Of a stretch of 64,000 nt of DNA, positions 6,298 through 36,842 are shown piece after piece (positions within the stretch are counted from its first letter, which is position 1; each line of letters opens with the position of its first letter). The notes under the pieces were generated by a model. The model had not been told where the DNA came from, made no database searches, and saw only the letters and a list, made by a program, of their open reading frames with translations. The translations under genes and the position numbers were made by a program. Location of the stretch: NCBI RefSeq assembly GCF_036321535.1, contig NC_087451.1, positions 19,158,001 to 19,222,000 on the forward strand, written 5' to 3'. The DNA comes from Camelus dromedarius. Lineage: Eukaryota.

Positions 6298-6510
6298 NNN
6301 NNNNNNNNNNNNNNNNNNNNNNNNNNNNNNNNNNNNNNNNNNNNNNNNNNNNNNNNNNNNNNNNNNNNNNNNNNNNNNNNNNNNNNNNNNNNNNNNNNNN
6401 NNNNNNNNNNNNNNNNNNNNNNNNNNNNNNNNNNNNNNNNNNNNNNNNNNNNNNNNNNNNNNNNNNNNNNNNNNNNNNNNNNNNNNNNNNNNNNNNNNNN
6501 NNNNNNNNNN
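6298..6510. other. Assembly gap (213 N) in the FXR2 3'UTR
   Basis: N run seen directly. Confidence 0.99.
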
Positions 6511-13773: not shown

Positions 13774-13937
13774 NNNNNNNNNNNNNNNNNNNNNNNNNNN
13801 NNNNNNNNNNNNNNNNNNNNNNNNNNNNNNNNNNNNNNNNNNNNNNNNNNNNNNNNNNNNNNNNNNNNNNNNNNNNNNNNNNNNNNNNNNNNNNNNNNNN
13901 NNNNNNNNNNNNNNNNNNNNNNNNNNNNNNNNNNNNN
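13774..13937 (-). other. FXR2: Assembly gap (164 N) inferred to contain FXR2 exon 2 (53 nt)
   Basis: Exon 2 (GFVKDVHEDSVTIFFEN) is found nowhere else between exon 3 and the promoter. On the minus strand a pyrimidine tract (tcactttct) runs into the gap. Confidence 0.8.
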
Positions 13938-19305: not shown

Positions 19306-19741
19306 NNNNNNNNNNNNNNNNNNNNNNNNNNNNNNNNNNNNNNNNNNNNNNNNNNNNNNNNNNNNNNNNNNNNNNNNNNNNNNNNNNNNNNNNNNNNNNN
19401 NNNNNNNNNNNNNNNNNNNNNNNNNNNNNNNNNNNNNNNNNNNNNNNNNNNNNCGGGNNNNNNNNNNNNNNNNNNNNNNNNNNNNNNNNNNNNNNNNNNN
19501 NNNNNNNNNNNNNNNNNNNNNNNNNNNNNNNNNNNNNNNNNNNNNNNNNNNNNNNNNNNNNNNNNNNNNNNNNNNNNNNNNNNNNNNNNNNNNNNNNNNN
19601 NNNNNNNNNNNNNNNNNNNNNNNNNNNNNNNNNNNNNNNNNNNNNNNNNNNNNNNNNNNNNNNNNNNNNNNNNNNNNNNNNNNNNNNNNNNNNNNNNNNN
19701 NNNNNNNNNNNNNNNNNNNNNNNNNNNNNNNNNNNNNNNNN
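19306..19741 (-). other. FXR2: Assembly gap (436 nt, N except a 4-nt cggg island at 19454-19457) inferred to contain the FXR2 5'UTR and coding exon 1
   Basis: The minus-strand flank GCAGTAGGCGGTGGCGGCAG resembles the start of the FXR2 mRNA; GC-rich sequence on both sides. Confidence 0.85.
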
Positions 19742-27631: not shown

Positions 27632-27700
27632 GGGCCAAAGGGTCAGTGGCCCTGTCTCCTGCCTTCCTTCTTACCCCTGAGGCAACCTTTAACCCTCCAC
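27632..27700 (+). promoter_or_regulatory. SHBG proximal promoter nuclear-receptor elements (HNF4A/COUP-TF-type FP3 and FP1 homologues)
   Basis: GGGCCAAAGGGTCA 27632-27645; CAACCTTTAACCC 27683-27695 (reverse GGGTTA-A-AGGTTG, a DR1) in the TATA-less position recalled from human SHBG. Confidence 0.65.
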
Positions 27701-27777
27701 CAACCATGTGTGAGGCTGCCTGCCCCCATGCTTTCTCCCCAGAGCTGTCTGAGGCACAGAGAGGACCAAGGCTGATA

Positions 27778-30617
27778 ATGGAGAGCAGAGGTCCACTGGC
27801 CACATGGCATGGGCTGCTGCTGCTGCTGCCGCTGATGCCTCCTAGCCACGCAGGAAGGGCCCTGAGACACACTGTCCCCAGCCAGGTGCAGGGGCAGGAC
27901 AGGGTGCTCAGCCCCATCTGTGTTTAAATGAGCTACTCTTTGGCTCTGCCCTGTTCCTTTCTTTCCTCCCCTGGCCTTGTAGCAGTGCCTCTCCTTCCCT
28001 CCCTCTGTCTCCGGCATGTCCTTATTTCAGCTTGTTTGTTTTCTATCTCTGACAGAGGACTCAGGACCCTCCTGCTCTACACCTCAGCAATGGCCCAGGA
28101 CAAGAGCCTGTCACCATAATGACCTTCAACCTCACCAAGATCACAAAGTATGGGGTTGACCTAATTCCTTGACCTAGTCCCCTGACCTCACCCTCTCTCC
28201 ATCATCTCCTTTCTTTTCCATTTCTCCCTGCCCTTCTCTCTCCCTGAAGTCCACCTCCCTCAACCTCACATCTACCATCAAAGGGCACACCCCATACCCA
28301 GTCCTTCTGTGTCCTTCCAGAACCTCCTCTTCCTATGAGTTTCGCACCTGGGATCCAGAGGGAGTGATTTTTTATGGTGATACCAACCCAAAGGATGACT
28401 GGTTTGTGCTGGGACTTTGGGATGGCAGGCCTGAGGTCCAGCTTCACAATCACTGGGCCCAGCTTACAGTGGTCACCGGACCCTGGCTGGATGATGGGAG
28501 GTGGCACCAGGTAAGCCAGATCTAGTCCTGAGAGAGGGGTGTCTTGAGCTGGTCTGCGGAAGGGAACAGAACCAAGTTACTGGGTATCCTTTTACCATTG
28601 TCATCTCATTGAATCCACATAAAAGCCCCAAGGAGCTGCTATTCTTGTCCCCATTTTTTTCAAAGAGGAATTCTGAGGCTTAGTATGTAAGTGACAAGTC
28701 CCAAGTGAGCTAGTGATGTTAGCTGACTCGTCAAGTACGTGTTCTTTCTGCCATACAAAGCTGCCTCTGAAGAAAGTGGTGAAGGCAGGCCTCAGGGGTC
28801 CTGGTTCTGCTTCTCTTTTCCTTCCTGCAGTTAGAAGTGAAGATCCATGGAGACTCTGTGCTGCTGGGGTGGATGGGGAGGAGGTGCTGCCTGCGTCTGA
28901 GACAGGTCTCTGGGCCTCTGGCCAACAAACCCCAGCCCATCATGAGGATTGCGGTGGGGAGGCTGTTGTTCCCTGCCTCCAACCTCTGGTTACCGGTAAC
29001 TGCATCACAGGGGTAACCAAAGCTGGTAAAGCTCTGCTGGCAGGGTGGCCATGGGGGTCTAAGTCCACACTTCACGGAGAGGGGATGGGGTGAGTGCTGC
29101 ATGGGGGGAGGCCAAATACTTGTGTCTTGGAGGGGAATAAGCTGAGGGTGGAGAGGCTGGGACTAGGGCTCAGATGTCCTGATTCCAGCATCCCCACATC
29201 TTCCCTTTCCCCCATGGGCTCCAACTGGTCCCTGCCCTGGATGGCTGCCTGCGCCAGCATGACTGGCTGGACCAACAGGCCCAGAGCTCAGCATCTGTCC
29301 CCACTGGCCTCAGAAGCTGCTCCGTAGAGTCCCAACCTGGGATATTCTTCCCTCCAGGGACTGGTGCAGAACGCAGTCTTCAAGGTAAAGGCCATCTTTC
29401 TCTCCATGACCAGCTTGTGTCCATTTCCCTCCACCACTAGCCTCTTCCGTCCACAAATACCCAACCTTGAGACCTCAGGAAGATCATTTCTCCCCCACCC
29501 CCAGACATTCCCCAGCCTCATGTAGAGCCCTGGGCCTTCTCCCTGGACCTGGGACTCCAGCTAGCAGCAGGCTCAGGCCCTCTCCTTGCCATTGGGACCC
29601 CAGAAAACCCTACTCGGCTCAGCCTTCACCTCCAAGATCAAGTAAGAGAGGGATGCTTCCTGTATATGCTGGAGCCTGGAAGCAATGGGAGAAAAGGGGA
29701 CTCCAAGAAGTCAGTACTAGGAAAGCTTAAGGGTAGGGGTTGGGGGATGGGGGGCCTGCAGAGACACATGTTGAAGCTGCCTACACCAAGCAAATGGCTT
29801 TTACTTAAGATTGTATATTTACTTGGGACTTGGGGTGGGTGTGGTTTTATAGAAGGCCAAGCCAGGAGAATGGAGGCAGGATCGAGGTGGTGGGAATGGC
29901 CAGTAATTAGACTGTGTGGCTAAGAGGCAGAATTGAGGCAGCCAGAGTGGGACCACAAGGTTCACTCTTTCCTTCCCAACTTGTGTCCCTTCCAATATAC
30001 TCTGCATAAGGTGGTACTGTCTTCTGGGTCGGGGCCAGGGCTGGACCTGCCCCTGGTCTTGGGACTCCCTCTTCAGCTGAATCTGACTGTGTCCAGGGTG
30101 GTTTTGAGCCAGGGGCCAAAGAAGGAGATGCTTACTCTGCCTCCTGTGGGTCCTGGCTCCCTCTTCAACCTTTGGGCCCAGCTGCAGGGGCATCTCTTCC
30201 TGGGGGCTTTGCCAGGTAAGAAAGTGATGTCCACGTTTCTCAGCACACCACTGGAAACAGCTAAGGGGAGGGGAGAAGATGGGAAGGGGTGCATTTTTAG
30301 GGGAAGGAAACCTCTGGGAGGGAAGAGGAAAAGGCTACAAGAAGAGAGAGGGTAAGCGGGCAGTGGGAGGAAATGCGTTCAAAAATTTAGGTTGGAGAAC
30401 TGGAAAAGCAGGGAGGAGCTTCTGGATCCAAGCCACCCTAATGTCCCCTCAATGCTACCTCCCTCTAGGAGAGGCCTCTTCTGCCTCCTTTTGCTTGGAT
30501 GGCCTTTGGGCACAAGGCCAGAGGCTGGACATGGACCGGGCCTTGAGCAGAAACCAGGACATCTGGACTCACAGCTGTCCTCAGAGCCCAAGCAATGGCA
30601 CTGACACCACCTATTAA
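27778..30617 (+). CDS. SHBG: Sex hormone-binding globulin, 8 exons, with lesions (possible incipient pseudogene or remodelled protein)
   Basis: Exons 27778-27885, 28056-28147, 28321-28510, 28831-28995, 29225-29384, 29505-29641, 30008-30215, 30469-30617(TAA). Laminin-G motifs [21 protein letters not shown] and HSCPQSP are present. Acceptors of exons 5 and 7 are non-AG, and exon 4 has a compensated frameshift. Confidence 0.93.
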
Positions 30618-30618
30618 A
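30613..30618 (+). terminator. SHBG ATTAAA polyadenylation signal overlapping the stop codon
   Basis: TAT TAA A; no other hexamer nearby. Confidence 0.55.
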
Positions 30619-30649
30619 TCCCTACCTAAGAACCCCCTTTGAACATCAC

Positions 30650-32290
30650 TCATTCATTTATTCAACAAATATTTACTGTGCATCTGTAATGTACCAGGTG
30701 CTGTGCCAAGCACTGGGTTATACTGATGAGCGACATTAACTCTGCTTCCTGCCCTCTTGGTGCTCACGGTCCCCTGGGGGAGGCAGGCATCCATCAAAGC
30801 CTAACAAGTGAGTGGATAATTGGAAACTCTGATAAGCATCATAAAGGAGCAGTCAGGGAGCTGAGAGAGCTTGGAGGCCAGCTGCCTTGACCTGGGTTGG
30901 GGGGGAGTCAAGGAGGGCTTTCTGAGGAAGTGATGATAGCACCCACAGATACATACACCCCCACCTCCTTCCCCAGCAGCTACTCCTTTGGGACTTTAGC
31001 TTCCTCCCTCTGAGGCTGGTCCCCAGAAACCAGGAGGGAAGGGAAGAAGAGATGGGATTTTGTTGTCCTTTAGACTAGCCACTGCTATGCGAGAAAGCAG
31101 CAGCAGGGGGCGTGAGTGGGTCATAGAACGATGAGGGCAGGGGTTCTGGGAAAAGGGGTGGAGGCAGCAGGGAGAAAATAAAAGGGAGGAGAGCAGAGGG
31201 AGAAAGCTGCCTGTCTCTCCTAGCCTCGGTGTACTTGCTGTGTTCCCACAGGAATTTGTCTTTACTCCATTAAACAAGAATTGGCTTGTGCTAGTCCCAG
31301 CTGGAAAGGACAGATTCAGGAATATCTCTGCCCTCAAAGAATATATGGTGACCCAGCCCTCGGCTCCCAGACCTCTGCAGAATCCTGGTGCCCCAGCTCC
31401 TCCCTGGGGCACCCTTTTGCCCCAGCCCTCAGCTCCCTGGGAAACTTCATGCCCAACCCCCCAACCCCTAGCTCCCAGCTCTCAGCCCTCTTGCAAATCC
31501 TTACATCCTAGCCCGAAGCTCCCAGCCCCCTAGGGAACTCCAGCCGTCAGTCCCCACCTCTCAGTCCTCATCCCTCTTAGGAACTGTTAACCTAGCCCCC
31601 ATCTCCAGACCCCATGGGGATCCTAGTGTCCCAGCTTCCCAGGTGATGAGGATCTTCCTACCAGTAACCCAGGCAACAGGGTGAGTCACTCACTGGACCT
31701 TCTGTCCCCTTGTTGCAGGGATCAGCCAGGACCTAAATGGCTCCAGGGTAAGGAGACTTCCAGAGAGTCTCTGGGTTGGAAGACACAAATCCTAGGCCCC
31801 TCCTTGGACCCTCTTGATCTCAAGTTTGCAAGATCTATAGCTGCCTCCATCCAGTCAGAGTGTTTTGCAGGAAAGTCTTCAGCATGGCGAGGGAGCCCCA
31901 ATTCAACTCTGGTCCCTGGGCAATGTTCAAGGTCAGCCTGGGCCACTTGGACATGTCCATTCAACTGACATTTCCTGAGCACCTACTGTGTACCAGGCAC
32001 TGTTCTAGACACAGAGAATGCATTGATGAAAAGGATAGACACAATCCCTGCCCCTATGAAGCAAGCTCACAATATAAGGGAGGCAATGGCCAGACAGCTC
32101 ATAAACAAAAATAAATAAGCAAGGCCATTTCCGATAGTGGGCATCTCCAGAAAGGGAACAGAATCCTATAGTAGAAGCAAGGGTGGTAGGGGAGGAGTGA
32201 CATTAGCCAAGTGGTCAGGGAAGGCCTCCCTGAGTCAGTGTCACTTGAGCAGAGACCTGAATAATGAAAAGAAACCAGTCCTATGGGGCC
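30650..32290 (-). mobile_element. LINE-2 fragments (about 30650-30930 and 31955-32290)
   Basis: tcattcatttattcaacaaatatttactg...gtgccaagcactggg and cattcaactgacatttcctgagcacctactgtgtaccaggcactg, the reverse complement of L2 3' ends; unique sequence lies between them. Confidence 0.7.
31100..31113 (+). promoter_or_regulatory. Candidate CTCF site downstream of SHBG
   Basis: GCAGCAGGGGGCGT, 12/14 to CCAGCAGGGGGCGC. Confidence 0.45.
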
Positions 32291-36702: not shown

Positions 36703-36842
36703 NNNNNNNNNNNNNNNNNNNNNNNNNNNNNNNNNNNNNNNNNNNNNNNNNNNNNNNNNNNNNNNNNNNNNNNNNNNNNNNNNNNNNNNNNNNNNNNNNN
36801 NNNNNNNNNNNNNNNNNNNNNNNNNNNNNNNNNNNNNNNNNN
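36703..36842 (+). other. ATP1B2: Assembly gap (140 N) inferred to contain the ATP1B2 start codon and coding exon 1 (112 nt)
   Basis: Left flank is the GC-rich end of the 5'UTR. Gap size fits 112 nt plus margins, and MVIQKEKKSCGQ is absent elsewhere. Confidence 0.85.

Follow-up and report, generated by a model that had tools for sequence, protein, structure and literature searches.

Whether and how exon 5 of the SHBG gene is still joined to exon 4 is the question raised by the stretch of Camelus dromedarius DNA analysed here (contig NC_087451.1, positions 19,158,001 to 19,222,000 of the forward strand; 64,000 nucleotides (nt) in all, hereafter the window), in which intron 4 of the gene ends in AA, at 29223-29224, where a splice acceptor would carry AG. 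The missing AG had been reported in an original prediction made from the DNA letters, and it is confirmed in the sequence: the boundary between intron 4 and exon 5 reads ...cccccatgggctccAA|CTGGTCCCTGCC, the letters before the exon being ccccc atgggctcc AA. Our analysis of this boundary, of the RNA that crosses it and of the coding sequence around it indicates that camels and alpacas are probably unable to make the standard SHBG carrier.

An acceptor dinucleotide lost in camelids

The dromedary intron was compared with the orthologous loci of Camelus bactrianus (L002), C. ferus (L005) and alpaca (L001), using minke whale (L003), oryx (L004) and horseshoe bat (L006) as outgroups. In the orthologous alignment intron 4 ends ...GGGCTCCAA| in all four camelids and ...GGCTCCAG| in all three outgroups, which have AG at exactly the same position; the missing AG is therefore not a matter of chance. 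Because the same AA is found in four camelid assemblies while the outgroups have AG, the substitution, by which the final G of the intron became A, is fixed and is older than the camel/alpaca split. The four assemblies, all reading AA, also answer the question whether AG might in truth stand at 29223-29224. Furthermore, DNA-type sequencing runs from several studies and two organisms contained 100% of the sampled 31-mers of 29159-29330, and six runs contained 100% of the words of 27700-30700. Most estimates place the camel/alpaca split at 15-25 million years. A date of more than 11 million years ago is given in one source (PMC13751797).

The identity of the gene was established at the level of both protein and domain structure. 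Exons 3-8 of the window, with exon 5 taken from 29225, reproduce residues 68-401 of the RefSeq dromedary SHBG model X1 (P0164, XP_010994818.1) exactly, whereas exons 1 and 2 were assigned by eye from the sequence. PF00054 and PF02210, representing two laminin G-like (LG) domains, are recorded for P0164 and mark it as an SHBG orthologue; searched against the PDB, the translated exon 4 (E = 7e-15) and exon 5 (E = 2e-20) both hit human SHBG chains. A search with exon 3 followed by a full-length orthologue search yielded a set of mammalian SHBG proteins that includes the RefSeq camelid models, among which the Bactrian and wild-camel proteins differ from the dromedary window product at several residues. 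The Cys of the LDGC motif in exon 5 aligns with Cys164 of the human SHBG chain, and the Cys164-Cys188 pair of the first LG domain (human numbering) is encoded as C193 and C217 of P0164, both of them invariant columns. Gene identity, exon number, coordinates and frames were all given correctly in the original prediction.

Splice signals remaining in intron 4

The 5' end of intron 4 carries GT, conserved in the seven species compared, and the intron departs from the canonical U2-type GT-AG pattern at its 3' end, where the four camelids have AA. It does not belong to the U12 type either, as the donor GTAACTGC differs from the consensus RTATCCTT and no TCCTTAAC-like branch site is present near the 3' end. 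The polypyrimidine tract of the ancestral acceptor persists (Table 1). Upstream of it, 42 nt from the end of the intron, stands a CTGAT motif that is conserved in camelids, whale and oryx and is, judging by its sequence and position, the putative branch point.

Cryptic acceptors were located by a scan for AG dinucleotides, with acceptor strength expressed as pyrimidine counts only. The scan and the computed products bore out what had been predicted for the nearest AG on either side of the boundary: the upstream site (-36) adds 36 nt and 12 residues without a stop, and the downstream site (+33) removes 33 nt and 11 residues, including a disulfide cysteine that corresponds to human Cys164. The earlier list of splice outcomes was right about these two AGs and about exon skipping; missing from it were a third in-frame AG 54 nt into exon 5 (+54) and the retention of intron 4. 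Only 5 nt separate the -36 AG from the putative branch A, and its pyrimidine tract is weak (12/20); the next AGs past it are situated 74 and 95 nt downstream of the same A.

Table 1. Positions in the window of SHBG and of the features bearing on the joining of exons 4 and 5
Feature	Position	Strand	Remarks
SHBG, start codon to stop codon	27779-30617	+	8 coding exons
Exon 4	28831-28995	+	165 nt; camelid -1/+4 compensated frameshift
Intron 4	28996-29224	+	229 nt; donor GTAACT at 28996; last dinucleotide AA, not AG
In-frame TAA	29014-29016	+	met on intron 4 retention
CTGAT	29179-29183	+	A at 29182; only YTNAY branch-point-like motif in last 125 nt of intron
Upstream in-frame AG (-36)	29187-29188	+	
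Polypyrimidine tract of ancestral acceptor	29199-29213	+	15 consecutive pyrimidines; conserved in outgroups
Former acceptor dinucleotide, now AA	29223-29224	+	G to A at intron position -1; AA in 4 camelids, AG in 3 outgroups
Exon 5	29225-29384	+	160 nt, phase 0 to 1; end of first LG domain, Cys193 and Cys217 of P0164
Downstream in-frame AG (+33)	29256-29257	+	
Downstream in-frame AG (+54)	29277-29278	+	CAG|G
Exon 7 acceptor	30006-30010	+	ancestral cAG|AAR to cAT AAG|; splice shifted 3 nt, one Lys dropped

RNA across the boundary of intron 4 and exon 5

RNA evidence was obtained as the share of sampled words present in each sequencing run for the region 29159-29330 (142 31-mer words, 14 of them sampled), a measure in which junctions are not read directly. 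The expected share is 1.00 for retention or unspliced RNA, 0.79 for splicing at the -36 AG, 0.54 for the AA junction, 0.30 for the +33 AG and 0.15 for the +54 AG. Four transcriptomic runs from one study ('reproductive system') contained most of the words, namely X6 (14/14), X4 (12/14), X25 (11/14) and X1 (10/14). The presence of at least 10 of the 14 words has a probability of 4e-6 if only the +54 AG is used and of 0.0018 if only the +33 AG is used, and in the runs containing the region splicing confined to downstream AGs can be excluded; the +33 AG put forward in the original prediction is a real in-frame site, and its use as the sole acceptor is disfavoured (P about 0.002). The complete set of words in X6 has P = 1.6e-4 under exclusive use of the AA junction.

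In run X6, 15% of the whole-gene words were found vs 100% of those of the boundary region; the boundary is at least as abundant there as the exons and is therefore not a rare by-product or a trace of pre-mRNA in that run. The transcriptomic runs contained up to 34% of the SHBG words, which is about the exonic share, and the gene has thus not lost its expression. RNAs that run unbroken from the 3' end of intron 4 into exon 5 are thus frequent in these samples; they would arise by retention or by use of the -36 AG, and these two together fit the word shares best. Run X2, from a second study, had a share of 1.00 and may be DNA. No camel fragments were found among the proteins from run assemblies with P0164:131-401 and P0164:150-260 as queries.

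Predicted products of the alternative splice forms

Splicing at the AA itself gives a protein of 401 amino acids with the sequence of RefSeq X1. The -36 AG leads to 413 amino acids, through the insertion of 12 residues, and the downstream sites lead to 390 (+33, 11 residues removed) and 383 (+54, 18 residues removed). Two further outcomes end at 191 amino acids: retention of intron 4, in which a TAA is met six codons into the intron, and skipping of exon 5, for which a frameshift had been predicted and was recovered, with a stop after six out-of-frame codons. Only splicing at the AA itself can give the first LG domain in its wild-type form. The assertion in the original prediction that the choice of splice site decides whether any folded protein exists was too strong, the second LG domain being untouched.

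The 18 residues cut from the +54 form, encoded by the first 18 codons of exon 5, comprise five invariant columns (P188, D191, C193, W199 and L200) and three nearly invariant ones in a comparison of 37 mammalian SHBGs; because these columns fall within the removed residues, use of the downstream AGs cuts the best-conserved strand of the steroid-binding LG domain. C193 is absent from both the +33 and the +54 form, whereby its partner Cys217 is left unpaired. AlphaFold2 models of the 401- and 383-amino-acid forms, built with 37-sequence alignments, had mean predicted local distance difference test (pLDDT) scores of 44.6 and 52.1 and were too poor for use.

Neighbouring lesions and public gene models

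The exon 5 acceptor loss is one of three frame-preserving lesions in camelid SHBG. In exon 4, one G has been lost from a run of five after 28865 and CTGC has been inserted at 28887-28890, a -1/+4 patch that rewrites about eight residues such that GWMGRRCC stands where human SHBG has EVDGEE-V; both indels are common to the four camelids and absent from whale, oryx and bat. The third lesion is the 3-nt shift at the exon 7 acceptor, which reads cAG|AAG in oryx and bat and cAG|AAA in whale, and LQDQ|VVLSS is found across this junction in all camelid protein models.

RefSeq XP models are predictions and were not counted as RNA evidence. Exon 4 is joined to 29225, which amounts to splicing at the AA, in X1 of dromedary, wild camel and Bactrian camel and in alpaca X2 (P0282). 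The +54 AG is used by dromedary X2 (P0263, XP_064351257.1), Bactrian X2 (P0271) and the newest alpaca X1 (P0234, XP_072796504.1), and the coding sequence with exon 5 beginning at 29279 is identical to that of dromedary X2. The -36 and +33 sites are used by none of the public camelid models examined. The RefSeq camelid models thus cover this exact gene, X1 representing the AA junction and X2 the +54 junction (the reverse in alpaca). They show SHBG as a normal coding gene, however, and nothing in them warns of the lost AG, of the frameshift in exon 4 or of the displaced acceptor of exon 7. The public annotation of camelid SHBG, in which one model silently splices at a non-AG site, needs such a warning.

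The RefSeq models P0267, P0268 and P0269 (286 amino acids) start in another frame of exon 3 and enter exon 4 just past the frameshifted stretch, apparently an annotation device for circumventing the lesion in that exon. Beyond the camelids, SHBG is labelled LOW QUALITY PROTEIN in RefSeq for two-toed sloth, sperm whale, Mus pahari and gundi (P0172, P0195, P0235 and P0239, respectively); these mammals may carry frame problems in SHBG too, or their assemblies may contain errors.

Constraint on the camelid coding sequence

Codon analyses were conducted without exon 2, and DNA comparisons started at 28300. A maximum-likelihood codon model gave omega = 0.74 (kappa 14.5) within camelids vs 0.38 in whale, oryx and bat, and omega = 1 was not rejected for the camelids (p 0.47). 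The parsimony counts of synonymous and nonsynonymous changes were 12/28 on the camelid stem, 10/15 in the camelid crown and 85/92 in the background (Fisher's p about 0.05), and the ratio of exon to intron divergence was 0.81-0.97 within camelids vs 0.53-0.61 in outgroup pairs (P 0.016-0.05). A Nei-Gojobori ratio of nonsynonymous to synonymous divergence (dN/dS) of 0.32 between dromedary and alpaca (10 synonymous and 10 nonsynonymous changes) had the appearance of constraint but was dropped as misleading, since nearly all of the changes are transitions, by which the method is biased.

Individual substitutions were also examined. In Camelus, two CpG transitions (CGG>TGG) in exon 3 have replaced Arg by Trp at W100 (28418-28420) and W122 (28484-28486) of P0164, at sites that are conserved in other mammals and of which R100 is nearly invariant; alpaca is without these changes, and they therefore arose after the camel/alpaca split. 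In alpaca, G192D and R195H are among three substitutions that fall in the 54 nt missing from the +54 form (P 0.02). Only one indel separates the camelids in 1.3 kb of SHBG introns, leaving a test based on indels without power; it consists of about six extra C in the alpaca locus, in the poly-C just before the exon 6 acceptor, at the orthologue of window position ~29495.

Set beside the usual features of a unitary pseudogene, camelid SHBG has a fixed, clade-wide lesion whose disabling degree depends on the use of the cryptic sites, and its frame is unbroken. The chance of an intact frame under neutrality is about 15% by a rough estimate; with a divergence of about 1% per lineage, such a frame is not surprising. 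The evidence leans towards relaxed constraint on camelid SHBG, and loss is not proven.

A proposed dead acceptor weighed against its alternatives

In the reading that we favour, to which we give about an even chance, the old exon 5 acceptor is dead and camelid SHBG is transcribed but crippled or decaying. Its starting point is shown by the sequences: in the ancestor shared by camels and alpacas, a G to A substitution at the final base of intron 4 destroyed the acceptor, and the change became fixed. Early spliceosome assembly would still be plausible because the pyrimidine tract and CTGAT are intact and conserved, and the second step, which is normally abolished once the G at acceptor position -1 has become A, would be left without an AG at the right place. 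From what is established about AG choice in this step, an arrangement in which the -36 AG is only 5 nt from the putative branch A and the next AGs lie 74 and 95 nt away would be expected to give inefficient splicing, retention and a mix of weak alternatives, as would fit the word shares. The join between exons 4 and 5 would then be made badly or not at all, and a large share of transcripts would keep the 3' end of intron 4 on exon 5.

Full retention would lead to the stop six codons into the intron and to the product of 191 amino acids, with nonsense-mediated decay to be expected, and the -36 AG, with its 12 inserted residues, would offer an alternative route to RNAs with a retained 3' end. 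The AGs within exon 5, chiefly the +54 site modelled in RefSeq, would provide further outlets, at the price of the most conserved strand and one disulfide cysteine. None of these forms would yield a normal first LG domain, and in combination with the exon 4 patch and relaxed constraint the camelid protein would most likely be no normal steroid carrier.

Several observations speak against a gene in decay. With the exons joined as in RefSeq, all four camelids have an open frame. The compensated frameshift of exon 4 suggests that selection was acting at that time, and of about 120 highly conserved positions 5 are violated by the dromedary protein vs a median of 3, which makes it no outlier. For the camelids omega = 0.38 is not rejected either (p 0.10), and at the low divergence among them the tests of constraint have little power. 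As regards RNA, the word shares cannot separate retention and use of the -36 AG from ordinary unspliced pre-mRNA or slow splicing; all four transcriptomic runs that contain the words come from a single study, of which another run, X3, has none of them. Moreover, the pig model P0284 starts inside intron 4, and SHBG RNA containing this intron is therefore not unique to camelids.

The open frame and the small number of conserved sites violated would also be at home in a remodelled gene, in which one cryptic AG (+54, -36 or +33) is efficient and a variant that is 18 or 11 residues shorter or 12 residues longer is made, secreted and selected; we consider this rather unlikely. Such an account would explain why each lesion keeps the frame, from the exon 4 indels through the in-frame AGs to the exon 7 shift, and it is in line with the modelling of the +54 form by RefSeq in three species, although those models are predictions and not RNA evidence. 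The alpaca substitutions, among them G192D and R195H, are as expected if the 54-nt piece is untranslated there, and the share of 10/14 in run X1, which contains the whole mRNA, fits use of the -36 AG (P 0.84). However, the +54 and +33 forms, which lack invariant residues and leave Cys217 unpaired, can hardly be squared with a folded LG domain, and exclusive use of the downstream AGs is contradicted by the runs containing the region. The -36 AG, for its part, is 5 nt away from the only branch-like motif and has a poor pyrimidine tract, and the constraint measured in camelids is indistinguishable from neutrality.

Continued use of the AA site, by leaky non-canonical GT-AA splicing or by adenosine-to-inosine (A-to-I) editing of 29224, inosine being read as G, would produce the 401-amino-acid protein of X1 and appears distinctly unlikely. 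The AA junction is the one drawn in the camel X1 models and in alpaca X2, but X1 models may be driven by homology. In Camelus, the strong pyrimidine tract is accompanied by all invariant residues of the first 18 codons of exon 5, and the share of 10/14 in run X1 is compatible with this junction (P 0.14), whereas the 14/14 of X6 has the low probability given above if the AA junction is used alone; nor is the donor of the U12 type, and the usual effect of a -1 G to A change on the second splicing step stands against this route as well.

Precedents for editing are available in the human GT-AA introns of ADARB1, NRK, HOOK3 and COG8, which A-to-I editing makes usable (Parada et al. 2014, PMC4176328). 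Like camelid SHBG intron 4, these are U2-type introns that begin with GT and end with AA in the genome; unlike it, they have their sites within RNA duplexes, with A>G seen in the reads, whereas no duplex was found at the camelid site. The predicted fold of 29100-29350 is no more stable than that of shuffled letters (z = -0.29), and within 28300-30700 there is no inverted repeat that covers 29224, partners farther away not having been searched. Rescue of the AA by editing is thus unsupported. That the AA has served the whole family as a working acceptor, through A-to-I editing or another non-canonical route, for more than 11 million years, with the 401-amino-acid protein being made, is improbable; if it were so, a major secreted protein gene would contain a family-wide, conserved, non-canonical splice site.

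The idea that the species truly has AG, and that the AA is an error of assembly or an allele either private to the animal sequenced or polymorphic, can be dismissed as extremely improbable, with no point found in its support and with AA present in four independent assemblies of four species and every sampled word of the region present in DNA-type runs from several studies and two organisms.

Known counterparts and implications

Changes of G to A at acceptor position -1 are known from human disease genes with U2-type splicing, where the same base change results in cryptic AG use, exon skipping or intron retention. The camelid change differs from these mutations in being fixed throughout the family, in its age of more than 11 million years and in having nearby cryptic AGs that are all in frame. 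The fixed loss of a splice site in a gene under relaxed constraint is a familiar kind of event; its occurrence in camelid SHBG appears to be unreported in the literature searched. At exon 7 there is a resemblance to NAGNAG tandem acceptors, in that the upstream AG of the old pair has been lost and the downstream AG is used, but there is none within 3 nt of the exon 5 boundary, the nearest AGs being those 36 nt upstream and 33 nt downstream.

SHBG sets the fraction of testosterone and oestradiol that is free in blood, and it acts in the testis as androgen-binding protein. If camelids are indeed without normal SHBG, hormone assays and 'free hormone' calculations taken from other livestock would be inapplicable to camels, llamas and alpacas, and camelids would represent a natural mammalian knock-down in which to learn what SHBG is needed for. 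To our knowledge, only birds have so far been known to do without an SHBG gene. The loss of bird Shbga (bioRxiv 10.1101/2020.07.02.184432) resembles the camelid case as an instance of a vertebrate lineage without the classical SHBG gene; the bird gene is absent, whereas the camelid gene is present and transcribed with an open frame, its loss of function being putative.

Outside SHBG, five runs of N totalling 949 bases are listed for the window, at 6298-6510, 13774-13937, 19306-19741 and 36703-36842.

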